A DNA stretch of 64,000 bases from Haliotis rufescens (lineage: Eukaryota). Below the pieces are notes generated by a model, which searched no databases, was not told the DNA's origin, and saw only the letters and a list, made by a program, of their open reading frames with translations. How positions within the stretch are numbered: position 1 is the first letter of the stretch; each line of letters starts with the position of its first letter. Below are positions 22,825 to 64,000 of the stretch, in pieces. Both the position numbers and the translations under genes were made by a program. The stretch is taken from positions 992,001 through 1,056,000 of the forward strand of contig NW_025964372.1 of the NCBI RefSeq assembly GCF_023055435.1. The letters are read 5' to 3'.

Positions 22825-23040
22825 CAACTATGCTTGTCGTAAGAGGCCACTAACGGGATCGGGTGGTCAGGCTCGCTGACTTAGTTGACGCATGTCATCG
22901 TATCCTAATTGCATGGATCGATGCTCATGATGTAAATCACTGGATTGTCTGGTCTTGACTCAATTATTTTCAGACCGCCGTAATATAGCTGGAATTTGCT
23001 GAGTGCGGCGTTAAACAACTACAAACAAACTAAACAAACT
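22825..23040 (+). mobile_element. SINE-like family C, ending ~30 bp before the splice acceptor of the second acyl-CoA synthetase
   Basis: ATGCTTGTCGTAAGAGGCCACTAACGGGATCGGGTGGTCAGG...GCTGAGTGCGGCGTTAAACAACTACAAAC. Confidence 0.87.
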
Positions 23041-23085
23041 ATATTGGATATACAAAAGTGTATATTGTTTCAGCTACAAGCTAAT

Positions 23086-24726
23086 ATGGCACACACTGAC
23101 CGCCAAGGGTTTACAGATGAAACAATAGTGGACAGAATCCAGTATTGGGGACAGACTGATTCCCATGAACCTGCTTTCATCTTCAGGAGTTCAAATGGCA
23201 GGTTCACCCTCTCAAGGGGGGACGTGTTGGACTTGTCCAGTAGGTTTGCGTCCAGACTGACCAAGGGAGGGTTGAAGCCTGGTGAGGTCGTCTGTATTGC
23301 TCTCCCGAACAGTCCTGAGAGAATAGTTGTGGAGTTCGGAGTCCATCTGGCAGGAGGGGTGTCTATGAATGGGCAGGTTCTACGAGAAGATGGGTGTGAT
23401 CTAGCAGAAAGCATCAACAGTGTAGGGTGTAAGATCTTAATTTCCGATCTTGAAAGATCGGACAGCGCTTGGGGCCTCTTACAGAAACATTTTACTATTC
23501 TGGAATCAGGAAAGGACCTCTTAAAGGTTACGTCGGATTTTGTCAAAGATTTGGAAATTGTTCAGCTTTGCCGAATTCAAAGGCACAGCGAAGGCTTCTT
23601 GGCAGGTTTGAGATCAGAACAGTTATTCGTCTATGATCGCACAAAGTCAACGGACCTTGCGACAATATTTACAACATCTGGTAGCTCGGGCTACACGAAA
23701 CTGGTGAAACAATCACATAGAAATATCCTGAACAGTGGGTACATGTTCAGTAGATGTACTGAACTCAGTGCACCCGACAAGATATATCACTCGTCGCCTC
23801 TAGGGTGGGCTGGCGGGTACCCAGCACACTTCCTGTACACTGGCTGCACTCGCGTTTTGGTTGACGCTGGAGCTGGACCAATAACGGATTTCGCTTCTCT
23901 GATGTGGAATGCCGTTAATGAAGAGGACGTCAGTGTATTTAACGCTGTGCCAATTCATGTTGAACTGCTGTACCAACAAGCTAAGAAGAAGGGGTTTAAT
24001 AGACCACCATTCAAGAAAATCATCACTGGAGGCCAGCCGATCAAACGAGCGAACCTTTGTGCAGTTGGGTTCCTTGCAGACTCACTTCAGATAGTCTACG
24101 GTGCCACAGAGTTAGGGTATATTGCATCCCTGAATGTGGACATCGACAGTGTTGCTGTCTTCAGAGACTTCACCGTTGGGTACCCTCTCCCAGGTGTACA
24201 GCTGAAAGTAGACTGCGAGTCCACGACAGCTCTGCACAACGAGAGTCGTGGAGAAGTCCTGGTCAAGTCTCCAACTCTCTGTATGGGTTACGCCGGTGAT
24301 GAACCCATTCCTGTTACCGACGGCTGGTTCCACACAGGTGATATTGGATATATGAACAAAGATGGCAGTGTGGCAGTGGAAGGAAGAAGTTCCGACGCCA
24401 TCATGCACGGCTCCTATGTCCTCTACCCGACGTGGCTGGAGAAGGTGCTGATGGCGTGTCCCGGGGTGCAGCAGGTGGCCATTGTTCCAGTTCCCGACCA
24501 GGTCATGCATCATGAGATCTGTGCGTGCGTGCAGCCTCAAGCCGGCGCTGAAACAACGACGGAAGACGTCATCATGTTCTGTAGGAAGGAGCTTGCACTT
24601 GCTCAGACTTCAACTCTCAATGTTGTCCCCAAATATGTAGTCTTCTTCGAAGCATTCCCACTTACCAGTACGGGTAAACTAGATCGGAAGAAACTTTCAG
24701 CTGAGGCGACATCGAAGCTGAGTTAG
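23086..24726 (+). CDS. AMP-binding enzyme / acyl-CoA synthetase-like paralog, 546 aa, intronless CDS
   Basis: True ATG at 23086 (MAHTDRQGF...) follows acceptor TTGTTTCAG; the track's 22996 start lies inside a SINE. Motifs IFTTSGSSGYTK, YGATE, DGWFHTGDIG, EGRSSDAI, PLTSTGKLDR; collinear with the 13713-15365 protein. Confidence 0.93.
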   Translation: MAHTDRQGFTDETIVDRIQYWGQTDSHEPAFIFRSSNGRFTLSRGDVLDLSSRFASRLTKGGLKPGEVVCIALPNSPERIVVEFGVHLAGGVSMNGQVLREDGCDLAESINSVGCKILISDLERSDSAWGLLQKHFTILESGKDLLKVTSDFVKDLEIVQLCRIQRHSEGFLAGLRSEQLFVYDRTKSTDLATIFTTSGSSGYTKLVKQSHRNILNSGYMFSRCTELSAPDKIYHSSPLGWAGGYPAHFLYTGCTRVLVDAGAGPITDFASLMWNAVNEEDVSVFNAVPIHVELLYQQAKKKGFNRPPFKKIITGGQPIKRANLCAVGFLADSLQIVYGATELGYIASLNVDIDSVAVFRDFTVGYPLPGVQLKVDCESTTALHNESRGEVLVKSPTLCMGYAGDEPIPVTDGWFHTGDIGYMNKDGSVAVEGRSSDAIMHGSYVLYPTWLEKVLMACPGVQQVAIVPVPDQVMHHEICACVQPQAGAETTTEDVIMFCRKELALAQTSTLNVVPKYVVFFEAFPLTSTGKLDRKKLSAEATSKLS

Positions 24727-25007: not shown

Positions 25008-25170
25008 NNNNNNNNNNNNNNNNNNNNNNNNNNNNNNNNNNNNNNNNNNNNNNNNNNNNNNNNNNNNNNNNNNNNNNNNNNNNNNNNNNNNNNNNNNNNN
25101 NNNNNNNNNNNNNNNNNNNNNNNNNNNNNNNNNNNNNNNNNNNNNNNNNNNNNNNNNNNNNNNNNNNNNN
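25008..25170. other. Assembly gap (N run)
   Basis: Run of n characters. Confidence 1.
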
Positions 25171-30956: not shown

Positions 30957-33900
30957 ATGAACAACAAGGCAAAAGGAAGAGGGAAGAAAAGGAAAGCTCC
31001 ATCGAAAGGTAAGTACCACAAATTTCTTTTTCACTGTAACTGAGTTAGGAACTTTCAAGTCATTATTTGATGAACAGTTTGCCTAATTCTGCCAACAGAT
31101 TTCTTCTAGCAGGGAGTTTTCTCCGGCCCCTAATCAGTGCCACTGATGCATAAGGTCCAAGTCTTTTTGACATGAGGTTATCAAGTTAGGAATATGAGGT
31201 ATCCATGTTAGGTGTTGGTCAAATGTGACTCCCTGCAGGCAACTGGGATATGTAGTGATTGCAGTTTGTAATTCTTGTATATTTATTATTTGGTTGAATG
31301 GTAAGTGTGTGAAGTCATAATTTTTATGGTATTTTGTAATTTAAGGGTGTGGTTTGTGGAGCTGCTTGTTGTTGAAAAGTGCGCAGCAATTATATTTGCA
31401 TTTTTGTTTGTGGTAAGGTATTTGATGTTTGTTAAATAAAGGTTTTGCTTTTATTGGAGTTACGTTTTATGGCTTTTTTCTGTTTTCTAGCATGTATTAC
31501 TTCGTTGCTCCACCGGGGGACTGGGTTACGTGAGTGGTTGGTTTTAGAGATGGGTATACATTTAGTGGCAGTTTTATTGGATTTTTGTTGATTTTATTTG
31601 TAAAGTTTGTACATGAAGTTTCTAATACTTTCTATGTTTGTGTTTTTTATTTGTGTTCTGTCTATTTGATTGCAGAGTTCTATAAACAGCTGCCAGTTTT
31701 CATTATTGAAGTTGAAATGTATTAGCTGGGCATTTTGATCTAAAGATGGGTCTTGTAGTGGTTTGGAGATGGTAAGCGATATTTTTATGGGTCAGTGGGC
31801 ATTGCCCCAGGTGTCATTGTGAACTTCACAGCTTTTTTTTATTTCAAAGGTTCGCTGTAGTTACTCACTGCTGTTGGATTTTGAAGATCATCAGTAGGAT
31901 AACTTGGTTCATTATCATTTAAAGTTCTTAAGTTATTGCTGTCAAGCCAGTCTGTGATGAGTTTGCCAAATTTCTTTGTATATGTGTTTGTGCCCCACAG
32001 TGGATGGTCAGCACTGAAGTTTCCTAGCAAAAGTGTGTTTGGATTTATATAGTTGAATCATAGGTTTTCGGACATCATAGGTTTTCAGACGGCCATTTTT
32101 ATCTAGATAGCTTGCGCTATACTAGGGGCCGTTGCATAACACAGACATTGTTCATACTCAGATGATGGCTTGTTTTTTAAGAGAAAGGTGTCTTTTATAA
32201 GTGAATGAGATGTTTTGCAGTTGTTCAGAGAACGTGGTTACAGAAAGAACTACAAGTGTTTCTTTACCCCCTGGATGCCAGAGGGATATATATGTCCCTC
32301 CTCTTCAACCCTCACTTTGAAGTAGAATAAAATTTAAAATACATCATGCAGACAAATACACTTCACAGTTTTGAATTTTGTGGGAAATTCCCTGTTCCGT
32401 GATATCATCAAATGTCATTTAAGGCAAAGCTAAATTACTGAAAATGACCTCTGAAAATTAGGTACATTGTAAATGTTGCCATTTTTTACACATTAATAAA
32501 TCACCTTTCTCAGTGTTATTTACAGCATATTTTTTTAATCTAAATTTCGGATATTTATTCGAAGAAATGAATTTAAAAAATAGCATATTGGTGATCACGG
32601 GTATCTGTGTTTTATCAAATATCCAATGTTCATTCTAAAACGTCGTTGATAACCCTAGAAGTGTTTAAAATGTTTTGGAAAATATGCAGACACAAACGCC
32701 AAAGTGAATTTTCTGCAATATTGGATAGTGTTTACAAAAAATCTCATTTCACGCATATCGGTATTAAAGACGCCAATAACATCACATATATTTCAAACTC
32801 TGATGATGTACATACATCCTTAAATTCCTCATACAGTTTAGATTCAAATGTCAATGGGTCTTTGTCACCAATACCAAGTGTCAAGATGAAATCAAGCAAA
32901 AAAGATTAGGTGTGAAAACAAACGCTGTGCTCGGAAAACTGAGTGTACGAAAAATTAGGGAAATAAAAAAAATACATTGCAATCATTTGTTGAATTCAAC
33001 AGAAATTGTTAAAGTTTTCGTCCAGCGTGACGCGATGACTGAAACAAAATCATGCACAACCCCAGCGGTATTTATCAGAATGTTTTACTATTTCTCTTGC
33101 TTTCAATGAAAAATATAACAACAAATAACAGTACACAGATTGTCAGAATGTTTCTGATTACTTACATGTCACATTTTATGTACATACGATCCCAGAACCA
33201 ACGAAAGTCCCCTTGTAAAGCCCCGCATGCTGTTGTCAGTGAACATGCCATTTTGTAAAAGTTGGTCATCGCTAGTGGTGTGACTGGTGTCATACGTCAA
33301 CGTTGTTGTACATATTTGATAATTTCTTTGAGGTGAAGATCCTTGAATGAAAGCACACATGATCATTGTATCATGCTGTTTACAGTTTCAATTATGATTC
33401 AGATTCAAGATGTATTTTATGCAATTTTTTCACATAATTTAATAATTCCACTATGAAAATTTATCAATGTTCATTTCATATCATACGTAAAAATATAGGC
33501 CACAAAACGTATGAACCTGTGTTAATCTCCTGTTTGTTTGAACATTTGAACAAGAAATTGATACCGTTGAATGCAATATTTTTTTCATTTAGACAAGTGT
33601 TAAAAGATGAAATGAAATCGTGTAATACTCAATATTGTAATTTCATAAAAACAGGTTACTGAAAAGCCATTTCATTTTATTTTGAAACTAAAACTGAATC
33701 TATTACTGTAAATAATCGGACTACTGTAGCAAAATGGATAAAAAAAATTGTTGAACAGTATGAACACATTTTTAGAAGAATTTTTTTCGTCTTTTTATAT
33801 TTTGTGTCGTATGATATACAGAACAGTGAAGCTACAAATGATATACAAATTATTCCTCACATTGTGTATTGTATAATGAGTTCAACCTTTTTAAATATTG

Positions 33901-36900
33901 TGATCACAGGATATTAAACTTTATTTCTCCAAGAACTGTTAAAAAATATTAAAAATATAAAGCGTGCCATGTAACCAGTGTGTCGAACCATATGTGATTA
34001 TCCTTGATAATTCTATACCAGCTGCTATACGTCTGAAATAATGCTGATGCGCCGTTAAATTTTAACTCACTCACTCTATACCAAAAGGAGCTTTCTATGC
34101 ATCTGCTTTTGTATAATTCTGAGACAAGATTAAGAGAAATATTCAGATAATAATGAACAAATACATGTTCAATATTGAATATGATTATGTTTGTTTTAAA
34201 ATAGTCTAAATGCAGACATGACTGAAACTGGTGAACCAAAGCCAAAATTATCTAAACATAAATCAGCATGTGGCATTCCCAGTAATTGGCCTCTTCCAAA
34301 GTACAAAACGTGGGTAATATATGACAGGGATAATAAGAATGATTATTTTGCAAAATATGCAAAGAGTATGGTCAATCAGTTGGAAAAGATGGGAAATATA
34401 AAAATTCTTCAATGGTTTGAGGGGTTTCAGAGCCAACATCCTTAAAACACATTTATGTCATTTAAATTTGTCATCTAATGGATATTAACATATGTCACTC
34501 AAGGCAACCGGCCACGTATGTGAAGCTCTTCTTATACAGACTGGTTCTTGGAATTTTTTATTTCGGCCAATAACATAACTCGGGTTGGTTTTGTTTACCA
34601 ATGCAGAACTCCAGATAAGCTTGTGGTGTTGTGGGTATTTTACCCATACATTTTAAAATCATTGGGTATCAGTAATTCTATCTGAGTATTCAAATTTCTG
34701 TTACCAACTAGTTTTTGCACATGTGGGTATTTAAGTTAAATATTTTAAAAAAACTATTAATCTAGTCCTTGCAAACTGGTGTCGAGTGGGTTCGAGAACA
34801 TTATAGGACTCAAAAATACCACGACACTTCCACAAGAAAGTGTGATGGCAAATGATCATGATGTAACTGTCATCGTGGAGTTTGGCAAGGTTGACGGAAT
34901 GCCCGTTTATAATTTCAGAATCAGTTGCTGATTTGGTAATTGAATACACAGGGTTACTTCACAATATTTTGATGATACGCACAAGTTTTATTTTTGTAGC
35001 GTATCTGTAATGTTCGTTGCGTAATTGATACTCTTGGATTTTATTTTACTGCGTATTTCACGCAGATACGCAGGTATCTGGAGCTCTGCCAATTTTTACA
35101 AAACTTGAAACCTCCATCTTGCATCTTATATATGTTCATTTAGTTTCTGTAAATTTAATGTTGTAGTAGTTTTTCTCTTCATTTTCTGCAGAGCAAGAAA
35201 ACCAGTGCTCCCAGGAGAAGGGTGTTACCAACAATGATGAATTGAAGTAAGTTCAGTAAACTATGTTTATAATGAACACGTTAGTGAACTTACCGATATA
35301 ACAAACTTATTTTTTAATCCCGGCCATTTATTGTATATATGCTGAATATATGCTTATAATGAACTACTCATATTACAAACTAAAATTAGTGGTCCCTTTG
35401 AGTTTGTTATAACCATAGTTTACTGTACATTCATAAAAATAGTAAACAACACAAGCAAGTACCAGTACTATCTATCCATTTGCAAAATCTACATACAAAT
35501 CAACAATTTTGATACATTTTTTTTTAATGATAATACAACATTCTTTCCTTATTTGGAATACTTACATCTAGATACTTGCATGGACATTGGACATAGATGC
35601 ACAAACCTTGAACAATGATGAACATTAATGGTCTGGATAGTAAATTGTAATGTCAAGTACTTGACTTTCACTTTACAGATTTTCAAAATGTAAATAACTT
35701 AAGTATGTCCACATACATATATTCAAAGTTTAGAAGATTTTTTTTGTCTGTTATACAAAAACAAGTTAACTAAGAGGCTGCTTGACTGTTCGATTTAGCA
35801 CCTTCAGTTTAACACAACCTTCAAAATAGCAAAAAACACTGGTATGACTTCATGTGGATAAAACTTGTATTTCAGACAGACTGATTCACAGTCCAGGGTT
35901 GTGCCTTCATTTACCAAGAGGAAGAAGGTAACTGAGCCTGCACCTGAACAGTAAGCCACAGTTGGAATTTAAATGTTGTTGATTTGTAATTATGGTGATG
36001 ATCTGGGGTAGGGATGTCAAAATGCATATGTCATGTTTGGATACATATTATGATACTTGAGTCACGATACTAAATTTCCACTCTTTACAAGCTTACAAAA
36101 GGTTATGGCTTGCAAGTAGTTAGTGTTTTTCTCACATGAATATGACATCAGTTGAAACTATTACAGAGAATAGGCAAAATACATTCCTGGCAACATTCAG
36201 CATTTGCTGCACCACACATAATGTCATTAAATTCATCACTGAAATGGAAATTAATGTTTGTTATTTAATGCACACTTTATGTGTGTAAACATGCCGCAGA
36301 GCAATGCAATGGTTCTGACACTGTATATATGCTGTAAACTGTTAGTAACGTGTTTAACTTGGGATATATGGAAACAAGTCTGTAGATGATGAGCCATTTC
36401 ATGCTAGTAAACTAAAGCCTGGGCAAATGGCAATGTGTTTTTCACTAGCCCTAGTGTCTAGTCAGGTATCTCCACAGTATCTGGACAGCAACTATCTCAG
36501 TGGATGTTTTAGTTGACAGCCATTGAATCAGATGCATTCATTGATCAAGACGCATGTGGGGATTTCAGGTTAGACAGCAACCTGGAGGTGACTTTATGGA
36601 TGGGATGGTCAGGCTTGGTGACTTGGTTGATAGTATGTCAAACCAGGCATATCATTCCCAGAAAGTGGGAATGGTTGTTCATTATATTAATCACTGAAAT
36701 ATCTGATCCAGACTGGATTATTTGTAGACTGCTGTCATATTTTTATTAGCTGACTAGATCGAACAGAGTTTACTAGACTTGGGCTTCAGGCTTGTGTCTA
36801 AAGTTGTAGAGTGAAACTGATTACATACAAGGTATACTGGGAACAATATTAAAAGGGAACTCCAATATTTATTCAGAAATTAATTGTAAAGAAATGTTGT

Positions 36901-39900
36901 TGTTCAATTCAGTCTTCATAGTGAAGTCAAAATCTGGTCCATGCCCCGTGAGCATCAATATAGGCACAACATCTGAGCATACTGGATATCAAATGCTGGA
37001 TTGTCGCCCTTGGTATCCTTTGCCATTCTTCTTGTAAGCTGCAGTTGTGTTTGCAAACATAACAGCACCATTGCTCAAGATCCTTTTGGAAGAATTTCTT
37101 CAACTTATGGTAATTCAAGTGCAATGTTGTTAGTACGCAGGACACCTATAAGAAAATTTGAAAAGTCACATATCAGACCAACAGTAGGTCACTCGCACTG
37201 CCAGTGTCCCGGCTGTGCAATCAAAATGGTTCGGTTTCCTTGATCTATCAGCCGAATTTATATCATGTCCGTACCATTTTGGAAGAGTGAAATCCCCACG
37301 ATGTCTTCAGATGTTATGATAAAGCAGTAATGTGAAGATATGTGATGTCATCATTTCCGTGATCAAGTGGGCACTGTGTGATGGGATTAGCCACTCAACT
37401 AGTTGGAACAACTTCTTCTTCAGTTGGACCTTACACAGCTTCAATCATATTTCTGTCAAAAATTAGCATACAAGTGTAAACAGTATTTAGTATTTACTCA
37501 TTTTCAACTCTGATAAAGAAATTTTGGTGTTGTAGGACAGAATGCAACGACAATGGGTCTCATAATAAGAGACAGGAAGAAATTGAAGGATGTGACACTT
37601 TAGCCTTTGATAAATCACCTCTTCACACAGAAAAAGAAACAGAAGCAGAAGTGTCACATGGACATCTGGAAACAAAACCAAGAACACAAGAATCCACGTA
37701 CACAGTCAATACTGAAGTTTCCATTAGCCCCAAGGAAGAACTGCCAGAACAGGAGGATCAACACCCAGGCTGTGGCCTTACTCCTAAAACTTTGTTAAAT
37801 GAAACAGGTAGTGATCCAGCTGGATGTATAACAAATCCTCAGGTTGTGGAGGGTTCCCCAAACAAGACTGACAAAACGGCACATGTATTAGAAAATATAA
37901 TTTCTTTTGCTAATGTGGCCAAGGTAGCTGCTGACACAACAAAGGTCATGAAGCCCACTGGTGTATCATGTGGAAGTATGCCTGTCAGTGTGGAGAGATG
38001 GGGGCATGTGAAGGATGTAATGCCAGTGCCAGCATTAACTGATGAAGCAGAGAATGTTTCCTTGATTCCTTCCAAAAATATACTGAAAAGTTTAGAGCAG
38101 TGCATTGAAGATGGTAAGTCAGCTGAAACAGACGGTGACATTTTGAAGCCAAATATGGCGTCAGTAGAAAAGATGGAGGATATTCAAGCTCATGGAGAAA
38201 TGGAGGAGGCTGATCAAGGTCATACAGACCAAGGTTGTATGTCTGAACAGGTAATTTCTCTAATAAAAGTGCAAGATACGAAGCTGACAGAAACAATGGG
38301 AGCAGACATCAATCAAAATGAAGAGAACAGGAAGGGTAGAAAGTGTTTCTCGCTGACTACACATGAAGAAAGCCCAATTGATCCAATGCTTGAATCAGGC
38401 TGTGCTGAAGAGTCGGATAAGACATCTGATCCTTCATCAATGGACAAAAGCATAACAAAAAATAAAGAAGTGTACAAAGATAAATTGGTCGATCAACATA
38501 CTGAGACCAAGAAGAATTCAACGGAGATACTGCAGGGCCAGTCAGGGGTATCCAGTGAACAGGGTGAAGTTAGTGCAGATGAGATCATTCCTCCTGAGAT
38601 GGATATTGGTATTGCTGAGGAGAGAACTGCAGCAGTGAAGAACGAGGAAGCTGACATACTTGCAGGTATGTGAGTCTGATATACTTGCACACAAAAGGAA
38701 TGCCTATGCATCATCTACTTAAATGAATTAGCGAGTATGGTTTTACACCGCTTTTAGCAATATCATGGCGGGTGACACCAGAAATGGGCTTCACACATTG
38801 TACCCATGTCGGGAATCAAACCCAGGTCTTCGGTGTGACAAGCAAACACTTTAACCACTAGGCAACCGACCCCCCCTCTCTCTACTTAAATGAGGAATTT
38901 CTGACAGATGTTGGTTTGGCAGGAATTTATTAAGGAACTATGTGTCCTTGACATGCAAATTCTTTTTTTTAAGATTTTAAGATTTTTCTAAAGTTCCCAT
39001 CTTCTTAAATTCAGAGGTATTTTAACATTTATTTAACATTACATTCAATGCAATTGTAATACAGAGTAACTGATTCTTGTTCATATGCTGTATGTCAGGT
39101 TTTGTTTGAAATTTGAATTTGAAGATAGATGGTTACTAGGTTTAAAATATGCAGTCATTGATTAAGTAAGAAACAATGATTGATTAAAGTATCAATGATT
39201 AAGAATCAAATGAAAGAGAATCATTAAGAGAATTCATTCTCCACATCCTCCATGTAAAACACATTGTAGACTTGAAACAGTACCCTGCTATGCAAATACC
39301 AGGAAACACTGCAGCAGCAACAGGCCTTGGTACCCAAATGTCTTCACTTTGGGATTTTTATAATTTTGTACTTAATTCTGTTATGCCCATAAATTCCTTA
39401 AATGAAATTGCGACTTACTATGGTCAGTGGAATCTATTGAATATGGAATAACACTCAGTATTGGAAACCCATGAAGATCCAAGTTAGCATATGTCTTCCT
39501 GTTGTAAAAGGCGACTATGGTTGTCTTAAGAGGCGACTAACGGGATCGGGTGGTCAGGCTCGCTGACTTGGTATCGGGATACTTGATGCCTCGTGGGGTG
39601 CTGCGCACATGTCACAAATCAGGTGAGGCCAGATCTTTTTTTACTTGCTTTACAAATTTAATGATGGTAAATTTTGTTGAAATGTTATAAACAAACAAGA
39701 TTTTTGTTAGAAACGTAGAGAAGCTCTATGTGTTTGCAAGGATTATTTAAACTTGCGATCTGACTCCCTGCACTTGACATCTACCGGTATAAATGATGAA
39801 CTGTCATATATAATATTGCATGAGAGGGAAGGGAGGTTACTCCAAATCATTTTGCCGATCCAAGGTGTTGGCCACTCTTATGACAAATATGTTTTCCCAG

Positions 39901-40656
39901 GTTGAGGTGACTTGTTTTTTCGAAACGGAATCTAACTTTCAAAGAACTGGCAGAGGAATAAGGCACTTCAATTGTTAGTTTTATCAATGTCCTATCAATG
40001 TCCCATGTTTTTAACAAAACAATGTACACATTCAAGACGTTTTGGTTTGTGAGGGATCTTATCAGTGACCCTATTTATGATTGTACTGACAGTGCAAGAC
40101 AAGAACTCTCCGAAGTCTAAACAGTGTTCCCTCTTGATTTGTCTGGTTTGCATTGCTGAAGTGACAGCTGTGTTTCAGGCTCTCCTCCCACATTAAAGCA
40201 TTATTTATTTATACCAGCCGACCTGTAGAAGAGGAGAGGAAAAATTGAATTGCCATTTCTTTTCTTTTTCACCTACCGACGGGTAATTTCCTATAAAAAT
40301 CTGTAAAGCAAGTGAAAGAAAGTGTGGCCTGAAGTTAAGCAGCACTGGTCCCCAGAGAGAGTCTATGGCTTCAGTCCTGCCCCACACTGAAGCAAATGTA
40401 GTGCATGTGTCGTCTCCTGAGGTAAACGAAATATGCCTCTGTTCACCTAGCAGTGAATGGGTACCAGCTAGGTTGGATGAGATGGCATAGGAACTGTTAT
40501 CCTTCTAACACCTCACAAGCAGCTTGGGTAGTATACTGCCCAGGGAGATGAGAATGAAAATCAAGTGCACGCTGATCCCTCAGCCTGGGTTATATGTAGC
40601 TCTTTAACCATGCTTTAGGATGTGGATTTGGTGCGTTATAAATATGCACATTAGTG

Positions 40657-40708
<52 letters not shown>

Positions 40709-40862
40709 CAGCCTTAGAAATTGGCACTAGTCCTGTAGTCCTTACCAAACTCCCCAATAGTAAAGGTATCCTAAGGACTAGTAGAAATTGGCCCATTTTA
40801 AGAGGTTTGCTATATGTTATCATTATAAGGACCAGTGGACAAAAACTGTTAGTTTCTAACCC

Positions 40863-40898
<36 letters not shown>

Positions 40899-43570
40899 AA
40901 ATAAAACTTAACTGACTGACTCACTCACTCTTGTGTGTTGATGATGTACAGCACCAGGAAAGGATGTAGATGCGGACATGGACTTCACAGACTCCCAACT
41001 GTGTGAGGCAGTCAGTCTGGAGGAATCAGCAAAGTAAGGAAACAGTACTGAACACACATGATTGCTTTAAACTGATCTGTGAATGAACATTTCAGTGTGA
41101 AATATTCTGTGATTTTCCATTTTAATTCACTTTTAAAAGTATGAGATTGAAGTACAGGTAGGTTATTATTAGTGAGAGTATAGTTTACTGAGTGCATGAT
41201 AAACATCATAAACATATTCGAATATTGATACTGTACATTCATATTGATAAAGGCATTGGAGTTACCTCCCTTACACTTGCTGCTCTGGGCAGAGGCGAAT
41301 TTGAATTGGCAAACAATTTGAGTGTATATCAATGTAGCAGTTAATGAATTTATTAAATTACAGTCTAAGTTTCACAAAAGGCTCAGATGACAATATCTTT
41401 ACCCAGCCAGGCAGTGGAATATTGTCTCCCTGATATATTAACCGGAGACCACCAGGTGTCTGTTTGATGAACCTACAAGGAGAATGAACCCACCATTATA
41501 TAAACATATAGCTGGAATATGGAATATTGCTGAGTGTGGCATTAATAAAGACACAGACAAATATGCTTACACATGTCATTTTGAAGTTTTGTGCTCTATT
41601 TTTATTATTTGTGACTTGTTTTCTCCTCGGACATGATATCTTTGAGTTTCCCCTTAAGTTTCGTGACATCACATAACAAGATGGAGATCACTTCTAACTA
41701 TTACAGTCAACTGATGGTGCTGCAAGAAGTTCAGAAGCAACGGATGGAAGGAAGGAAGATCATCCATGATCTCATTGTAGATCTGTCATATCTGAAGTAA
41801 GGCCTGTTCAGTTAATATGTTTTAACAGGTGTAGTCACTATTGGTCAAATTCTACTCATCTTCGGACACGTAATACATAATTCTTTCAATTTATGATTAT
41901 TCAATATGTAATGTGATTTTATAATTGGATTTATACTCCCAGGGATAGGAGGTAAGTATCTTCAGTGAGATATGTTTCCTTTCAATGATATGACATTTGC
42001 GTGGGGAGATTTCCTCTTATATGTAAGAATATGAAATAACACATGCAGCTTCTATCATAAAATGCATCATGTGTGAACTCTGACTATACTGTAGCAAAGT
42101 CAATATGTGACTACAATCCTGTTTGGGGATGAATTGCAGCCCTACTCTGATTAAGGATGCGACTGTTGCATAAACCACATCGCAACTAGAAAGTAACATC
42201 TAAACCTTGCAATGCAATATCTATGCACAAGACCTCTGGGAATTTATTTTGCTTTCACCTATCTGATTTTTTGTCTGACCCTCAACAACATTCACATTCT
42301 TGCTGTTGCTACCATTTTCAGCTTCCATGTCAGATGAGCAAGGGAGTAGGCTCGTGCCTCTGGTAGTTTTGGATTTTGCATGGGTACTGTACACTGTATA
42401 AGCACCAATAAATACCAGCTCAGGTTGTTTTGAACTAATCAAACCTAATTTGGACAATACTCGTCATTGTCAATGTCTGTGTTTGACTGAGGGTGGAACA
42501 GTATTTAAGTTAAATCACAGCCTTCAGCTTAAAGTGAGTGGAAAGCATGAAGATATGCAGGTCTTAATGGTGCATGCTATTACCTGATAACTATTTGGTT
42601 TGTAAATATCCTGGGTCGGTCCGGTTGATCGTCTGGTTTGAACACGAAGCAGAAATACTTCCGGTGATGTACGAAAATGAGCAATGGCGGGAATATAAAC
42701 CTGAGAGCACAGAAACGCCAAAGGACTTTATTTGTTGGTGTAAAAAGTTTACAGTGTCACCATAGTACAGATTAACATTGGTAGCATATTGGTAAAAAGA
42801 GAATCGTTCTGTCCACGATACATATCTCAATATCATTTTTCAATGCTTGGTATTCAAGGTGATTTCAAATAGCAATATTTATCAATGTATATATATTGAA
42901 TGTTATACACTTGTCAAATACCCGGAGCGTGCATCCAGAGCCTGCATCCATGCATATTTACTGAATGAGTAAACATTGTGTTGTACCAGCATCTTGTTTT
43001 CTTCAATTTATGAAATTTGTTTCATTCACTGGTGTTTTAAATTGCTTTTGAATTCAAAATTTAGAATTATACAATATATTGTGATATATATTGCAATACA
43101 GTCTTGTGCATCATAAAATATTGTGATGCTTTAAACCTCCATTACCCATCCCTCTTGAATGATTAACACTTTGGTGAAACCCACAAGTGTGAGGATATGG
43201 TGCTGACAAACCAAGCATCATAATCAGGGCAAATCACAATCAAAAGATTCTTGCTTGCCAAAGAAACACATCGATGAATTGTGGCACCATAGACAACTGT
43301 TCAAACATTTAGTGAAATGATAATGCCACTTAATGGTATTCATTTATCAAAACGAATCTTTATAAATATTATTCAACAGCTGAAATGAATATAAAGCATC
43401 TGTTGTTCAACATGTGGTCCTCTCTTAAATGGCTTGTTTCTTTTCATTTCAGCAAACTTGTACTGCGCACAAAACGAGAGATTGAGACGGCCAGAAGAAA
43501 AAGACAACCTCAGTCATGTGTACAGAATAGAGTCACTGGACAATCCTTTCAGGAACACCGGAAGTTTTGA
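30957..43570 (+). CDS. BRME1: BRME1-like (C19orf57/MEIOK21-like) protein, ~549 aa, 7 coding exons
   Basis: Exons 30957-31008, 35192-35246, 35876-35950, 37536-38665, 40952-41033, 41659-41796 and 43453-43570 are all GT-AG and phase-consistent, totalling 1650 nt. Basic N-terminus (KGRGKKRK; TKRKK), long acidic disordered middle, MDFTDSQLCEA, and C-terminal IIHDLIVDLSYLNKLVLRTKREIETARRK. The exon model is well supported; the BRME1 identity rests on recalled similarity of short motifs. Confidence 0.65.
31200..32040 (-). mobile_element. Decayed LINE fragment (endonuclease region)
   Basis: LLGNFSADHPLWG...GKLITDWLDSNNLRTLNDNEPS resembles the GDFNAHxxxWG...L.xLN...PT motif of LINE AP-endonucleases. 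Confidence 0.6.
34604..35088. mobile_element. MITE with TIR CAGA(A/G)CTCCAGATA (hAT-like)
   Basis: CAGAACTCCAGATA at 34604 and TATCTGGAGCTCTG ending at 35088. Confidence 0.7.
35254..35425. mobile_element. Tigger-like MITE (same family as 17167)
   Basis: CAGTAAACTATGTTTATAATGAAC...GTTATAACCATAGTTTACTG. Confidence 0.8.
36835..37480 (-). mobile_element. Decayed Tc1-like transposon
   Basis: LQEEWQRIPRATIQHLISSMLRCCAYIDAHGAWTRF is the typical Tc1 transposase C-terminus. Confidence 0.7.
38730..38875 (-). mobile_element. SINE family B
   Basis: Reverse complement of the family B consensus. Confidence 0.82.
40655..40897. repeat. (GTA)n microsatellite interrupted by hAT-like MITE at 40709-40864
   Basis: GTA repeats on both sides; the MITE is the reverse complement of 29378-29532. 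Confidence 0.88.
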
Positions 43571-43603
43571 TGCAGTTGTTTTACCACTACTTACGATGTG
43601 TTA

Positions 43604-45314: not shown

Positions 45315-45875
45315 CGAGAAGTAGCTTGATAAAAATACCACAACAAATGCAATCTGATTCATGAAAGCCATATCCACAGATATTAAGCTCCACGTCCCAG
45401 TTTAAACACGTTCTCGCTGACCTCATGATTTTTAAAACGATAACAAAAGCAAGGAGAAGCTATTTTGAAAATAAAGAAACTTTGTGAAAACACAAATATT
45501 CAAAACAAATATGTCAAAATATAGATAGTAAGCACTCTATGTGAGGAAACGTTTTCGGCGATGTTTCATTTCGACCTTCATTCGAAGTAGAATGTTTTTT
45601 AACCTGAAAATAAACTGCTCCCATACGTGTGTCGGTACACATGATACATGCAGATCATTCCTTCCCAGATAACAGTAAACAGTCCCCTCGTCATTTCTAT
45701 ATATAACTAAGTACATGTACACATATATCTGCATATCGTCTTCATCAATTTGTGAAATCATTTTTGGTTTCCGCCGTCGTGAAATTACTGGAATATGTTT
45801 TCGTTAAAACAATATTCACTAGTTAAGTTAAAAATATAAAAAGTTATCAGACAACCATTCGTCGGACAAATGTGT

Positions 45876-45907
<32 letters not shown>

Positions 45908-46371
45908 CACAAAACACCTACTTCTGTTACAGTCAGACTACGCATCGGTTACAACATTCTACTCCCAGTCAGAGACCATATATGGTCTCTGTCCCAGTCA
46001 AGTTGTGTAAACATGCCTTCCTTAGTTGACCGAGATAACAGCCACACAAACATGGCATGCGTCATTGCTGTTCACACGAACTGGTTGTCGAGTGCACATA
46101 CTCAGCTTATCAACTACATGTGTCCCTGCTTGGAGATATTGTTATCATATACCACGGGTATGGCACTATGATTCATACACGTATGACAATATCGCACAGA
46201 CACAATAGCTGTCACAGTTAGAGGGTGTGCGTTGAAGTTGGTTGTGTCTCAGCTTGAGAATCACGTAAAGGTAACATGTTTGCGCGCCGTGAGTTTGCGC
46301 CAAGCGTTTGATTTCCGTTTAACGTGAGGATCAGTCACTCTATTAGTAGGCCACAGTCATTTTGGACCGCC

Positions 46372-49300
46372 ATGTTTAAGAAGCTGTTTCTATTCACCTT
46401 ACTTGGCTGCGTAAGTTCGTCATTGGGTCAAGAGGATGCCTATCTTGACATGGAAGGAAACCATGGCCTATTAAAAGAGAATTTCGAGTCTCAAAGTATT
46501 ATTAATCTAGTCAGAGATATAGCTTTTAAGAAATTGTTTAGTGTTCGTGACGAACAAAATGTGAACAAAGAAAGCAAGACCATTCTCAGGGGAGAGTTTG
46601 AGGAAGAGGCTGCGAATGCTCCAGTGGAAGAAAATCCCCAGGAAGTTGCTAATCTCCGCCAGATGCTAGGGATTCTTCAGGACACACAAGATGTCTGTAT
46701 GAACCATACCCAGAATGTGATCACTGGTATTATGGAAAATAAAGAATGGGCTCTGCAGAGTAAGTACATTACATATACTAGTACATGTTACAATTTTAAT
46801 TACGAACAAACTATGGCAGCTGGAAATGTGCATTTCATTAAGAAAAAACTCATAGTAACCATATTCAATCGTTAATCTTAGCTTTTGGCCTAGCGTGTTG
46901 CTCCCAGAGTGTCATGTGAAACAACAAAGAAACATATTTACAGGGAATACAAATATGCTGTACTATCGGGTGATTATCGCACCCAAGCGATAACTGCACT
47001 ACTCATATCCACGGTTATCGCCATATAAACTAATGCAGAATCGCTACATGCAAAGCATGGATGTGACCCGTAGGGATTCCGCGTTAGAATGGGCCCAAAC
47101 ATGGCCTGATACACAGACGACGTCATGATGATACATACAACGAAGCAATGACGACACATTCTAACCATCGATACAACTCAACGTTCGCTAATAATCAAGT
47201 TTTGATCTAACAACAAAATCCCCCAACATGTTAAGATTGAAATATCCCGGTAAACAATGATTGGGTAACCCCTATAGGACCTGAATTTCGTGATGAACGG
47301 ACAAATGCATGCTGTCATGGGCACGAGGGGCTTGAAAACCTGTGTTTGGGTGTATCGTGACAGAATCGTTGCTCATTATCATAGATCACAACAGCATTTG
47401 CTTCTGAGGATTGCAAGAGAATGTATTTATGTCCCCTCAGAGTCAAAGTGTGTGAGTTGGGTTTAATGCCGCTTTTAAGAATATTCCAGTTATATCACGG
47501 CGTGTCAGCTTAATGTGAGAGGAAAGCCCGAAGAGATGCAGGTCTAAGACGTTTACCACTTCGGTGAAACCCATGACCTCATTATTGTGCTGACAAGCCT
47601 AGAAACATAATTGGGGGCGTACCGGGATTCGAACCCACAATCATAGGTTTCTGGCGTGACCAAGGGACGCAACTCTACACAGCGAATCGCGGCGCCTTTG
47701 ATGACTGGGCCACCCGTGCCCACTCAGCGTCAAAGACGTATGAGGGTGGAAGAATTAGGCAGATGCATGGGAATGCTTGAACTGGGTCAACACAACGTCA
47801 TGTTGCAAACTGCTTTGGTGTCAGCCAAAGTGTGATCGGCAGGGCATGCAGGCGATCTTCAACCACACAGCGGGAAGACAGGTTTCTCCTCATTGCAGCA
47901 CGTCATCATCACTTCGTGACTGCCACCTCACTCAGGGGAACGCCAAGAGGTCCTCTCATTGAAGCTGGTATCCAGTCACCTCCGGGCGACATCACAGGCA
48001 GGCACATTTGGATTGGGCTGAAGATCACGTCGCTTGGAAAGACCAGGTCTGGGTTCCAGTACTTTTTCACTGATGAAATACTAGATAATGTCTAGACTTC
48101 ACTGGTCGTCTTACCCTCGTGTGGTGTAGACAAGGAGATTTCAGGATTCCAACGTAGCCGAACATGACCGCTATGGAAGGGGCCCAATCGTGACATGGGA
48201 TTGGATCAGTAGAGCTGGAAGAACCGATCTCCATGTCCTACAGCGAGGCACGATGACACCAGTGTGTGCTTCAGGGATCTGGATATTTCATTAAACATGT
48301 CACGCAGTATTGTCTCGGGCTATTTCAGTAGATGCTTATGGTGATCCTTAGCTAACATTGATTGTTATATTTTCCAGAACAGCTTCTGGTTAAGAATTTC
48401 TGTGTTTGACAGTTTGTTTGCTGTTAACACCGCACTGAGCAATATTCCAGGTATGGAGAAGAAATCGAATCTGAACCAGGCAGGTCAGTGATGGATATCA
48501 TCAGCACACGACTGTGAAGATCCAGGTTAGAATTGGTCATCAGCAACCCATGCTTGTCGTAAAGAGGCGACTAACGGAATCGGCTGGCAACGCTCGCTGA
48601 CTTGGTTGATGTATGTCATCGTATCCCAATTGCATGGATCAATTCTCATGATGTCAAGCACTGGATTGTCTGGTCCAGATTCGATTATTTAGAGACCTCC
48701 GTCATATCGCTGAAATACTGCTGAGTGCGGCCTTAAACAAGAATCGATCAATCAATCATTCAAGCACTGGTTAATTATATCGTATCTGCAAGGTATGCAT
48801 ATGTTTCTCACGCACAAAAGATTCGTATTCATGATGTTGGCAGTATTGGACTCCAACCCGGCTTCAACGCACTCTGATATTTGACCACTGGTATATTCAC
48901 AGTGTTGGATGCTTTTGGTAAGCCTGGCAGTGCCATTCTCAAGGGAGAGCTCACCTGGCTGGGATCATTTGATGAATGTCTTGGAGTCACAACCAACAGG
49001 ACTGAGGTGGATTTCGGTGCCACGTATTGTAGAGCTCTCCTGATGCCCCCGAATCAGGTAGGAGATGTACTGTTTAATACTTGAGAAACATGTCAAAATA
49101 CCAACACTTTGTCAATGTATGTCCCACTACTTCATGGACATTACATGTGAAATAAATTCAATAAATCATTAATTCCACATGACAAGGTTGATTTATTGTT
49201 TCAAATGCACAGGGAAAACGATTTCAAATAAATGAAGAAAGGAAATCAGTTGATACATTCTTTTGCTATTTTAGTTACAAATATTTTCGTTCCATATGGT

Positions 49301-52300
49301 TGAAAATCATAGCAGAAAAGGGTTAGTGAGTGGGTATTGGTTTACGTTGCAATATTCCAGGTATATCACGGTTAGGGAGCACCGGAAATTGAACAAAATA
49401 TTGTAACAGCTGGCCCTCGACAGCCTGCGCCCTGGAACAGGAACTCGCACTACCAGTGATTAGTCTGTCTTGATTGTCTTAGAATATGTTGACAGGGGCT
49501 GCTTTCGATGGTTCAAGCTTGGCAGCAGGCAGGCTAGAAAACTACAAGTATACATCATGCTTCAGGAAACGCCTGGCACTCTGTGTGAGATATACTACAC
49601 GTTCTCCTGAACATACAAGTGAGCATGGCGTCAGCTTTGCTGTCAACTCACTGCGCAGAACGATAGAGCTTGGCAAGAATGGAACAGAGAGACTATTGTC
49701 CCTCCGATTCCTCACATCCGATATGCCTCTAACCCTCATCAGTGTGTACGTTCCTGACTTTCGCTCAAAACACGAGGTGAAGGATGAGTTCCAGTTCTAC
49801 GTCCAGCTCCACACTGATATGAAGAGAATCGCCACTCAAGAATAGCTGCTAATCTTTGGCGATTTTAATGCAAGAGTGCGTACTGAGCACATAATTTGGT
49901 TCAGAAAAATATCTGAATATACTTAATATCTCTAAATTTGGAAATTGTCTTGCAAAGCTAATATGCAGAAACTGACACTAATAGGCGAAACGATCAGTGA
50001 CAGGCAAGCAGATGAAGAGAGTAATGGAGGAGCTGGATAAAGACTCCTCGGTTGAGGAGCTGAGCAAGAGTATCTGTTTTGAGAGTAAGCACTCAGAATT
50101 GATCCCTCCAAAGGCTGACAACTGCAGAAAGGGACTCCTGCTAATCCACCTGTATGAACTTCTCTGCCAGTTTGGGGAAGAGGGAGCTGTGTCACAGGAC
50201 TTGATAGACTATGCAACATTGTCACCTTGTAGAAGAAGGATGATAGAATCAATTGTAACAACTGCCACAGGAACTCTGTCCTGAGCATCACCGGAAAGCT
50301 CTTCGCTTGTGTGGCCTTGAACAGATTACAGAAACTTGCTGAGAATATGTATCCCAAACCACAGCATGGATTCATGGCAGAACGACCCACAGCTGACATG
50401 GTCTTCACACTCCGACTGCTGCAGGAAAAGTGCAGAGAGCAGAAGCAGCAAATCTATGTCTCCTTCATCAACCTCACAAAAGCCTTCAGCCTTGTGAGCC
50501 GTGATTGGCTCCTCAGCATGTTCCAGTCATTGCATAATGAAAGGCACCATGCAATTTGACGGCTCATACACTGAGGCTTCCAACACCAACAGTGGAGTAA
50601 GGGAGGGCTGTGTACTTGCCCCTACCCTGTTTGTAAACTTCTCAGTGATGCTGAAACACGCCTTTGAACCCTCGACCACCCACTGAAAATGTGATGGGTA
50701 GTTCTTCAATCTGGCTTGCCTGTAGGCTAAATCTAAAGTGCGTAAAGTCCGAGACCCGGTCAAGGTTGTTTTCTGCTGATCCTGCATCCCGAGCACATTA
50801 GACCCTCTCCTCCAGATATGAAAAGAAACACAATACCTTCCACGTGCGCATCATGAAACGCATCCTCGGAATTAGCTGCAGTGACCAAGTCACAGAAAGC
50901 TGGAGTTCTTTCCCACGCCGCAAACCTGAGTCTCTTCTCTCTGCTCCAACATTGGCGATTTCACTTGCCTGGCCACGCTACAAAAAACTTCAGGGTCACA
51001 GGACGTTCCTGAGATTGACGGATGCCAACGAATAAAGAAAATTAAAAAGACATGACCACCCTGTACAGAAGATTCTATTAAAGTGTATAATACAAAGTAC
51101 CTGTTTATGTCAAGTTAAATAATTGATTTCCTAAACTATAGAAACACAAATGCTGATCTCAAACCACAATTCCGGCCCGCTTACGATTACCACAGCTGAA
51201 AATCCAATGGTCGTTCCGAAAACCTGTTTTGATCAAGGAGCAAAGTTTAGTAGTTGCAATAAGAATGTATTGATACTCTGGTGATTAATTCTCGACACGC
51301 AGTGACGCTCTTGACTTTTGTTTTACTTCAGACGAACCCGATGAATCCCACCCCGACATACATCACCCTCGGGATGTGCATGCCAGATTCCTGCTCTGGG
51401 CAAGACGTCACAGCCATCGCTAACGGCCGTAAACTATCACCTTTTCTTACTCCATGCTTTAAGGCCACGAAAGGCTGTTTTACAAAACTGTCGTAACTTC
51501 TTCTATACTTCAACGTAGACTGCTTCATCCTTCCATGCATGCATTTTCACCTTGGTTCACTGCAATCATATAGGTAAACTCGGGCAGCATTGTGTTCATG
51601 CATCACTTGCTGGGTATCTAATTGTATATCTATGCTATGAACCATAAGAAAATTTGTTTCTTAGTTTCGCTCGTCACATTTTATGCAGTCGGATCTAGCG
51701 TTACATTGATACAGTGAGTGAGTGTAGTGTTGCGCCGCTTTAAGCAATATTCCAGCAATTTCACACCAAAAATGTGCTTCACACATCGCATCCATGATGG
51801 GACTCGGACTCTGGCCTTGGGTGTGACGAGCGTACTCTTTAGCCACTAGGCTTCCCCACCGCCCGATCTAGCACTCCAAGGATTACAGTAACATGATGCA
51901 ATATCCCTCTTCCATTGCTTCCAGGGTATGATAACGAAGATAATACATGATCATGAAATATGCCGAATGGCCCCTAAATTATCTCCGTTTCGGTTATTTA
52001 TTAACTGGACCTTTCTTTGTTATCAGTGCTGATGTCTCAGAACATATCCCTTCTGGCAAGTGTTACCTGTTATGAAAAGGACAAGCCCCTTGACACTGAC
52101 GCCATTGTTGCCATGTAAGTAACAGGTATCTTTCAATCTCCTTAAACCTATCTATTTTACTCCAATACGATACCTTTGTGTGAAGATCTGACAATCTTTA
52201 CATTGGAGGTGGTGTCGGGTGAGCTTTCTAATCAATCAGTCCGCGTCCAGGATTCTATATACTCTGTAGAAACGAGCCAAACATTTAGAGCAAAATATCT

Positions 52301-55300
52301 GATTTCTGCATCTCGAAAACAAACATATACGGGCAGTTCCGAATATGGAATGGAATACATTAAAACTCATTCCGCTGTATTGTTGTGGATCCTGTCATAT
52401 CTGTCGCCTACATTGACAACAGTGTACTATCTGAGTAACATTTGTCTTCTGTGTGTTTTTACTTTTGTTTAGATCGAAGTGGTGAAGAAATAAAGCCGAA
52501 TCGTGTTAGAAAGCTGATAGTTGATTAACTCCATCTTCCCGAGGCAAGGAAGAACTGACTTTAAAAGTCCAGTTTCCGCCCTTGCCAAACTCGGCTGGAA
52601 TTATGGAGTTATATTTTGGCTGGACAGAAATTTCATCCTAGTTCGGCAAGGATGGAACGAAGACTTTTTTAGTCTGTTGACTCCCTTGCCTCGGGAAGAT
52701 GATTGGCTTAAGAACCAGTGCATGTACTATAAAGATGAGTATGAGAAACAATGCCCAAACTATGCATTATAAAGAACAATATTCAGACCATTCATTATAA
52801 GAATAAATATTGATACCATGCATTGTAAAGAACAATATCACTCCATGCATTATAAGGAACAACACACATACCATGCAATGTATTCATTGACCACATCGGA
52901 GATTCCGGATCAGGATTTACATGTGTATCAAATAGCAGACATTTAAAACTTGACTTTCTGTATCTCTTCACGATGATATTGGTTCGTTCTAGTGTCATCT
53001 GTTCAATATTTGCGTTGCTGGTCGTACTTGGAACCGGATATGACGTCATTTTCATTCAAATGCGCAAAGATGAAATTTCGAAATCAAGTTATAAACACGC
53101 AGGGGCGTCGACAACCGCTGATCGCAGAGAAACGGTTGACTCAGAAAAAGTCCCTTTGCTGTCGGAATCAACTTCTGTGAGCGTTGAAGATGCTGAGGCC
53201 ATACAGGAAGATGAAAGAAGTCGTAAAACCGCCGGCCGAGAAACCATCTATAAACCACAAGACAAAGCATCGGGTAATATTTTGAGACTAAACCGTACAT
53301 GTGAAATCTTCATTCTTCATTGGGTTTGTTTGTTGCTTGAATCGACAAAATTTCACATACGTAATTGAGTCTGGACCAGACAAACCAGTGATTGATAGTA
53401 TGAACAGCGTTCAACGCCCTCAGGATACGAAGATCCACAATCAAATGAGCCACTGAGCCTTCTTCACGCGTGTGCTTTGTTTGAATCTGTGTTTTTTCGC
53501 ATGTCATCACCAACGCATCATAACAGACTTATGCTGCAAAATAAACATTGCATGCATGTCAGCTTAGCACTATTTCGTATTTTCTGTTAGATGTAGGTAA
53601 ATGGGACACGCTAAAACACTATACGCAAAACAAAGTAAAATCTAGAACTACATTATAAAAATTGTAAGTGTGAAGTGACATTGTGCATAGTTAAGAAACA
53701 CACGGCCCAGGAAACCGTATATACAAATTGTAGACAAACTGTGTACTGTGTGTTAATGATAATTTATGGACTTTGACAAGCGTACTATCCTACAGGTAGA
53801 TTTCGTTTGCGATAGTATGCAAGGCAAGTGATATGATCAACTTGTACTGAAGTCATAGGTTGTCAAACGATTTTCTAGAAGGATAATTATTAATTATTAC
53901 AGAAAGTATGTTCCCTCATAGGCCTAAACAACAGACAGAATAAGACAAATGCGACCCGTTTTAATTGTTTAGCTTAGCTGACTGAAATTTAGTGTGCTTA
54001 TATCATGACCTGTTTTTCCACAGTCGTAAACATGTCAGAAAGCACTGGACCCATGACGCTGAAACTGCACATACTTGTTCCCTCCAATGATGACACCCCA
54101 ATTTGTTCACAAGGTTCAATTCAATCCGAGGTTCAATATGGCCGCCACGGCATCCATATTGAAAAAACATTATCATGGTCTTAAATCATTTATGTTAAAA
54201 ACTTGGTTTATGTAAACTTAGTAGTGGGACTCAACACATATACGCTTTATTAAATTCTCTCATAATGTATATTTCGCAATGTTAACTCAGAAATTGCAAG
54301 ACTGAGGAAGGTAAAAGATGTCATGTCTGTTTCTTCTCTTGATGATTTTTTTCTTCAAATCATAAAGCTTTTGGTGTTAGTCCCTTGTTCTCAGTATATC
54401 AGAACAAAATATTTGCAGATAAATGCTGATGGCATTTTTCATTAAGTGGCTGAATGTGTTGATATTCAAAAGGATGTCTACATACCCAGCTGTGTTTTTT
54501 GGTGAAAGCTGTTGTAAGCATTCCCTGTCTACAGAACAACCTTGGGTGTTTGGGTGTTAGCTGCTGTTAGCATTCCCTGTCTACAGAACCACCTCGTGGG
54601 TTTGGGTGTACGCTGCTGTTAGCATTCCCTGGGTTTGGGTGTAAGCTTCTGTTAGCATTCCCTGTCTTCAGAACCACCTCGTGGGTTTGGGTGTAAGCTG
54701 CTGTTAGAATTCCCTGTCTACAGAACCACCTCGTAGGTTTGGGTGTTAGCTGCTGTTAACATTCCCTGTCTACAGAACCACCTCGTGGGTTTGGGTGTAA
54801 GCTGCTGTTAGCATTCCCTGTCTACAGAACCACCTCGTGGGTTTGGGCGTAAGCTGCTGTTAGCATTCCCTGTCTACAGAACCACCTCGTGGGTTTGGGC
54901 GTAAGCTGCTGTTAGCATTCCCTGGGTTTGGGCGTAAGCTGTTGTTAGCATTCTCTGTCTACAGAACCACCTCGTGGGTTTGGGTGTAAGCGGCTTTTGG
55001 GATGCTAATGACGTCACTCATTGAATTGTCTGGTCCAGACTGAATTATTTACTGACTGCCGTCATATGACAGGAATATAACAAACAAACAAACATTATCT
55101 ATCTACAGAACCATCTCCCGTGAACGCGGTTGTTCCCATTATCTATCTACAGAACCATCTCCCGCGAACTCGGTTGTTCCCATTCTCTTTCTGCAGAACC
55201 ATCCCAAAGACTGGGGATTAAAATGTTGGTGTCATTCTCTGCCTACACAAATGGAGCAAAGATCCTGGATACGAAACAAGCAGCGGGGAGCCTGACAGCT

Positions 55301-63014: not shown

Positions 63015-63140
63015 GTAGGTTTAGCTTGAAGTGATTTCTATCTAGTAGCTATCTAGTTGTCGTTGTATTAATTCATAGTAGTGACACTGCATTCTGTATT
63101 GGCACATTAATCATATTATATAAACAATTTATCTTTTGAA

Positions 63141-63435
63141 ATTGTGAGTCACTTGTGACTTGAGATTCTTGTGACTCTTGTGATTTGTGACGCTTGTGAG
63201 TCACTTGTGACCTTAAGATTCTTGTGACCATTGTGACCTTGTGAGTCATTTGTGACTTGAGATTCTTGTGACCCTTGCGAGTCACTTGTGACTTGAGATT
63301 CTAGAGTCACATGTGACTTGTGACGCTTGTGAGTCACTTGTGACCTTAAGATTCTTGCGACCCTTGTGACTTGTGACCCTTATGAGTGATGACTCTTGTG
63401 ATGTGTGACCCTTTCACCCTTGATCTTTGTGACAA
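63141..63435. repeat. Complex short-period repeat built on TTGTGAC/GAGTCAC motifs
   Basis: Many TTGTGAC(T/C) units with a longer sub-period (GAGTCACTTGTGACCTTAAGATTCTTG recurs). Confidence 0.85.
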
Positions 63436-64000
63436 AGCGATGGAATCTCTAATGTCTGGAATCATGTGCTGTCGTAGGAGATGGCTGACTTTCGCTCTTA
63501 TTTATAGACTGCTAAGGACCAAAATAGTCATTTTCAGTCAAAGGCGTGGTCCTGTTCAAATGTGTAGTAGTGTAGGATGCCATAAAAACCCAATTCATTC
63601 GGCAAGAATACAAGACAATAACAGAACTTTAAGCTGTGTTTGTTAGTGCACATGTACCCCTGTGCAAACGTAGGACGTTACTCATAATATCTACCATTGG
63701 TTTCCGAGTTGTTATTCTGTATTTCAACCATATTCTTTTTCTTAAAAAGGTAGAAAAACGTGTGTTCCTAACCCTTAGAAAAGGCATAAGTCAGTAGTTA
63801 ATCGTTGGAACAACGATATATACTAATTTGACTTTTCAATTATTTGCGACAAGGTTACGAGGTCATCTTGCTGAAATCCAAACAAACAAAACATTTCTTT
63901 GAAAAAATTCAGGCTCATACCTTAAATGTAAAAAAACAACCTTGATTTGTAGTTGTAGCTGAAAACATATCTAATGTCGACACCAACCCAACACCCCTCC

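Follow-up and report, generated by a model that had tools for sequence, protein, structure and literature searches.

A seven-exon gene on the forward strand of the abalone Haliotis rufescens genome (assembly GCF_023055435.1, contig NW_025964372.1) probably encodes, as judged from its sequence, a divergent homologue of BRME1 (C19orf57/MEIOK21), and would be the first invertebrate member of this family. In meiosis, BRME1 acts as a cofactor by stabilising MEILB2/HSF2BP on BRCA2. The gene occupies positions 30957-43570 of a stretch of 64,000 nucleotides (contig positions 992,001 to 1,056,000), hereafter the window, to which all coordinates refer; GT-AG is found at every exon border and the exons read as one open frame. 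Three independent lines of evidence pointed to BRME1: a match between the C-terminal helix of the abalone protein and BRME1 peptides in the PDB, the clusters returned by a feature search of the ESM Atlas, and a DSQ motif located upstream of the helix.

The closest database protein, annotated by NCBI as "uncharacterized protein isoform X3" of H. cracherodii (P0001, 533 aa), was identical at 504 of 533 positions (94.6%) and had the same exon structure. P0001 was mapped onto the window by tblastn to place the exons and served as the query in full-length searches, and the spliced abalone protein was joined for the analysis of length, stops, composition and alignment. Comparison of P0001 with the PDB (177,635 sequences, E<=10) returned two matches only, both of them BRME1 peptides: 8a51_B (E 0.18), which corresponds to human BRME1 E602-K641, and 7z8z_B (E 0.74), which is the mouse peptide. 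Both were crystallised with the alpha-1 helix of MEILB2/HSF2BP. A profile built from three Haliotis proteins matched BRME1 at E 0.022, and adding the related protein from Gigantopelta aegis, a vent snail, brought this value to 0.0034 (19.5 bits), with BRME1 again as the sole match. An E value that improves with the breadth of the profile, while thousands of coiled coils in the PDB remain silent, is the pattern of a true remote homology.

The alignment is ungapped across human residues 605-635, with 12 of 31 positions identical, and falls within the crystallographic helix of human BRME1 (T605-R638), which binds HSF2BP alpha-1 at ~20 nM. In the mouse protein V548, L555 and I562 occupy the heptad "a" positions, and the 3E mutant loses MEILB2 binding; these residues align with abalone I484, L491 and V498. 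The mouse "d" residues L551, L558 and T565 align with abalone L487, L494 and T501, so that the unusual threonine in the core is retained. Beyond the hydrophobic positions, abalone S492, N495, R503 and E506 are identical to the BRME1 helix, and the basic run of the mouse protein (575-RKTK-579) coincides with an RRKR run in abalone. At the level of the sequence, the abalone protein matches the MEILB2/HSF2BP-binding helix of BRME1. In the gene this helix is encoded by two exons, with EGRKIIHDLIVDLSYL at 41747-41794 (+) and KLVLRTKREIETARRK at 43454-43501 (+).

A feature search of the ESM Atlas with the whole protein gave a second indication. The top three named clusters were all BRME1/C19orf57 (PF15710), with scores of 0.93, 0.91 and 0.90 and with 210, 204 and 200 of 256 features shared. 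Shuffled proteins reach a top score of at least 0.9 in 4-10% of cases; by chance alone, the top match would be unlikely to fall on the same family that the PDB search had pointed to. The Atlas may contain only about four BRME1 clusters. When the C-terminal part was searched alone, no usable feature match was found and the structure matches were mere long helices.

The third line of evidence is a short motif upstream of the helix, DF-x-x-DSQ-I, which the first-pass annotation of the window had ascribed to vertebrate BRME1. The repair oligonucleotide used for the mouse Brme1 delta142-472 allele (PMC7498267) bears this out: its translation by hand contains DFLPDSQI, followed by a GTAAGA splice donor. 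The corresponding sequences are DFTDSQL in abalone and DLSDSQL in Gigantopelta, which differ from the mouse motif by a one-residue indel; mouse is the one vertebrate sequence in this comparison. In abalone the motif belongs to exon 5, which reads DMDFTDSQLCEAVSLEESA(N) and then meets a splice donor. The mouse exon ends 11 codons past DSQI in phase 0, and the abalone exon 10 codons and 2 nt past DSQL in phase 2; because the phases differ, this exon end was not counted as a conserved intron.

The general architecture of the protein also resembles that of BRME1, which is described as an acidic, domain-free and intrinsically disordered protein of ~600 aa with its HSF2BP-binding activity in a C-terminal fragment. 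Its centre is dispensable in vivo, since delta142-472 mice are fertile. Acidic and disordered composition, absence of known domains and a poorly conserved centre were all found in the abalone protein, in which D and E account for 18% of the residues and disorder-promoting residues for 64%. AlphaFold2, run with a four-sequence alignment, gave a predicted local distance difference test score (pLDDT) below 50 at 443 of 533 residues, and the sole confident structural element was a helix spanning residues 451-512 (pLDDT 91-98). The likeness to vertebrate BRME1 thus includes size, acidity, disorder and a DF-x(1,2)-DSQ-[IL] motif ahead of a C-terminal amphipathic helix, with a basic run and then a short tail behind it. 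The two differ in the length of the linker that connects DSQ motif and helix (~30 aa in abalone versus ~60 aa in BRME1), in the abalone DSQ motif having its own mini-exon and the helix being split by a phase-2 intron, and in that the abalone is a gastropod, outside the vertebrate range reported for the family.

Conservation among gastropods was concentrated in the same parts of the protein. In comparison with H. rubra and H. asinina, exon 4 retains ~47% identity and the three final exons 80-90%; the central exon is fast-evolving. The only relative found outside Haliotis in a profile search of 1.84 billion representative proteins was the 920-aa protein XP_041371106.1 (P0006) of Gigantopelta aegis, which matched only over the C-terminal ~80 residues (E 7.6e-12). 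This protein and the Haliotis proteins P0001, P0003 and P0004 are true orthologues, all of them unannotated ("uncharacterized" in Gigantopelta and three Haliotis species); the Gigantopelta orthologue has a different, repeat-rich centre. Conservation between the two genera is limited to the N-terminal patches and the C-terminal ~90 aa. The shared elements are the GRG-KRK and PSF-K-K-K patches, D[FL][TS]DSQLC, EGRK..LI.D..YLNKL.L.TKREI.TA.RK and a terminal RKF. The basic patch of exon 1 is kept across Haliotis species and Gigantopelta, and the PSF-x-K-K-x-K of exon 3 is kept in Gigantopelta. The shared parts indicate that the portion under selection is a small C-terminal module together with the patches resembling a nuclear localisation signal (NLS).

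Several results weigh against the assignment to BRME1. The family model PF15710 (Brme1, formerly DUF4671; 699 positions, cut-off 27 bits) gave no match at E<=10 in the four gastropod proteins (P0001, P0003, P0004 and P0006) or in single exons, nor did it find anything in the six-frame translation of the genome, a search to which an intron-split helix is not visible. The profile search recovered only Haliotis and Gigantopelta, hence no bridging sequence from another phylum, and sequence word searches returned only Haliotis species or the query itself. The Gigantopelta protein alone gave no BRME1 match. The case rests on ~50 conserved residues, and the best E value of 0.0034 spans ~30 residues of an amphipathic helix. 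The DNA-binding R549 of mouse aligns with histidine and R540 with glutamine. In the Atlas search, four of the ten best matches fell in one family, a weak count according to the warning issued by the tool itself. Finally, the literature from 2019 to 2026 describes MEILB2 and BRME1 as proteins without recognisable relatives beyond vertebrates. The first-pass annotation had proposed a molluscan BRME1 recognisable by a short, intron-split C-terminal helix; this proposal found backing in the PDB matches and in the Atlas, but not in PF15710.

Other domain searches were equally silent. Pfam matched no family in the full-length orthologues, and exon-by-exon searches of Pfam and the PDB gave chance-level candidates only (DUF4476, MYO10_CC and MED17), which were rejected. 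Searches with single exons are blind to the helix because the intron splits it and each half is too short.

Taken together, the silence of PF15710, the restriction of the relatives to two gastropod lineages, the shortness of the match (E 0.18 to 0.0034), the reported confinement of MEILB2 to vertebrates and the heptad patterns common to amphipathic helices would suit another explanation, in which the gene encodes a lineage-specific (vetigastropod/neomphaline) disordered nuclear protein whose coiled-coil helix resembles BRME1 by chance and binds some other partner or itself, with no link to BRCA2-MEILB2. We consider this explanation unlikely. A chance resemblance does not account for the fact that both BRME1 peptides, and no other coiled coil in the PDB, were recovered at E<=10 with an E value that improved as the profile was widened, nor for the retention of the polar S, N, T, R and E positions of the helix in addition to the hydrophobic ones. 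It is also at odds with the whole-protein embedding search, which led to BRME1 independently, and with the DF..DSQ[IL] motif, a second and collinear element in common with mouse. A convergent mimic, that is, an unrelated disordered protein whose helix came to fit a MEILB2-like alpha-1 and which acts like BRME1 without common ancestry, is very improbable: short helical binding motifs can recur in disordered proteins and no similarity is detectable beyond ~50 residues, but descent more easily explains the collinear order of N-terminal patches, acidic centre, DSQ motif, helix, basic run and tail, as well as the embedding similarity of the whole protein. Divergent homology to BRME1 is the reading that we consider probable.

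The exons of the BRME1-like gene are listed in Table 1. The motifs named in the first-pass annotation were all located on the + strand at the positions it had given, and the intron that it had placed within L-N-K was confirmed to be in phase 2. Its seven-exon frame of 549 aa reads cleanly with an exon-6 acceptor at 41659, but the RNA uses the acceptor at 41707, as does P0001, and the product is 533 aa long; the 41659 acceptor would add 16 aa to exon 6.

Table 1. Exons of the BRME1-like gene of H. rufescens, with their content and the basis of their placement.
Feature	Position	Strand	Content and basis
Exon 1	30957-31008	+	Start codon; NLS-like basic patch KGRGKKRK at 30972-30995; corresponds to P0001 residues 1-17
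Exon 2 (55 nt)	35192-35246	+	Placed by tblastn of P0001, GT-AG borders and frame
Exon 3	35876-35950	+	Second basic patch FTKRKKV at 35910-35930; placed by GT-AG borders and tblastn
Exon 4	37536-38665	+	Large acidic disordered centre, ~377 aa; covered by RNA contigs
Exon 5 (mini-exon)	40952-41033	+	DFTDSQLCEA at 40981-41010; predicted long helix starts here
Exon 6 (RNA form)	41707-41796	+	First half of the binding helix at 41753-41796, from R481 through the second base of the N495 codon
Exon 7	43453-43570	+	Second half of the binding helix at 43453-43501 (to K511), RRKR, tail ending in RKF, TGA at 43568-43570

Public RNA data document the transcription and splicing of the gene. Contigs from four runs, each belonging to a different study, were compared with positions 37580-43579 of the window. 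The joints that they contained, all GT..AG, connected 38665 to 40952, 41033 to 41707 and 41796 to 43453. The first of these was present in three runs and was reported as 38662 to 40949, an ambiguity of +3. Single contigs of 1.6-1.8 kb crossed several exons. The RNA thus joined the last exons to those upstream, as the first-pass annotation required, with exon 6 starting at 41707 instead of 41659. The 41659 acceptor was not seen in the contigs of the four runs, an assembly product from which rare variants drop out; it gives a clean reading and may be used in a minor isoform. The junctions of exons 1 to 4 are based on the NCBI model of the congeneric species, together with the length of a 1,816-nt contig. 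A single locus for the gene was found in the genome (1.33 Gb), indicating that the gene is single-copy; because there is only one locus, the contigs come from spliced transcripts rather than from a processed copy.

The introns contain further sequence elements. Short repeats at 38733-38867, 39505-39572, 40722-40855 and 43159-43233, some of them in mutually opposite orientation, matched RNA contigs by the thousand, with a very high summed depth, and probably belong to an abundant family similar to short interspersed elements (SINE-like). One copy seemingly lies in the 3' untranslated region of the transcript, as the end of contig X1 fits 38769-38863 (-). Intron 4 has two microsatellites, (TAG)19 at 40652-40708 and (AGT)11 at 40865-40897, which are the source of spurious poly-Val and poly-Thr open reading frames (ORFs). 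In intron 1, an ORF of 75 aa at 34218-34445 (+) has a protein-like composition (…GIPSNWPLPKYKTWVIYDRDNKNDYFAKYAKSMVNQLEKMG…) without a Pfam match and may represent what is left of a mobile element, or else an exon missing from the annotation.

If the homology to BRME1 holds, the following mechanism can be envisaged. The N-terminal basic patches would direct nuclear import. By analogy with structures 7Z8Z and 8A51, the helix from about R481 to K511 would pack in parallel with alpha-1 of a MEILB2/HSF2BP-like partner, giving a 2:2 four-helix bundle, and the RRKR run would assist DNA contact, as the RKTK run does in mouse. The complex would then stabilise MEILB2 on BRCA2 at meiotic breaks and promote the loading of RAD51/DMC1. 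Partner, binding and meiotic role are only what we infer from the vertebrate system.

No report of an invertebrate BRME1 was found in the literature, which also yielded nothing useful on HSF2BP in molluscs or metazoa. Four short degenerate HSF2BP/MEILB2 patterns, three derived from ARM motifs and one from a mouse Hsf2bp oligonucleotide (PMC7498267), gave random-looking matches without reading-frame context in the abalone genome, a result uninformative on absence; in the mouse gene an intron interrupts the first of these motifs (PMC7498267). An invertebrate BRCA2 cofactor has been described in Caenorhabditis elegans, where RIPR-1, a cofactor of BRC-2, has been put forward as functionally analogous to the MEILB2-BRME1 relationship (bioRxiv 10.64898/2026.06.19.733317). 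Unlike the abalone gene, RIPR-1 was found through interaction and not through homology, and no sequence relation is claimed or seen.

The neighbours of the gene in the window, two intronless genes for AMP-binding enzymes, are uninformative for synteny. They are long ORFs of 550 aa at 13713-15365 (-) and 576 aa at 22996-24726 (+), arranged divergently upstream of the BRME1-like gene. Their closest PDB entries are 4-coumarate-CoA ligase, oxalyl-CoA synthetase and luciferase-type acyl-CoA ligases (E ~1e-26), and their intronless state may point to retrogenes in tandem or to an expansion of recent date. Just downstream of the second ORF, positions 25008-25170 consist of 163 N, corresponding to an assembly gap or to masked sequence. 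On the other side of the BRME1-like gene, several ORFs of medium length without Pfam matches at 45800-64000 (+) suggest another multi-exon gene.

We lean, if only slightly, towards an origin of BRME1 that precedes the vertebrates and goes back at least to the common ancestor of protostomes and deuterostomes; the same would by implication hold for the BRCA2-MEILB2-BRME1 recombinase-loading module. In this view, BRME1 was overlooked in invertebrates because conservation is limited to ~50 residues in the DSQ motif and binding helix, which are spread over small exons. A pan-bilaterian range is extrapolated from two gastropod lineages and the vertebrates. If correct, this view would contradict the published range of the family, move the origin of BRME1 back by several hundred million years and predict a MEILB2-like partner in molluscs. 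The confinement of these proteins to vertebrates has been treated in the literature as an obstacle to the study of BRCA2 regulation in simpler animals. The abalone gene would define a minimal module made of the DSQ motif, the alpha-1-binding helix and the basic run, and would provide a motif profile with which to look for BRME1 in other invertebrates.

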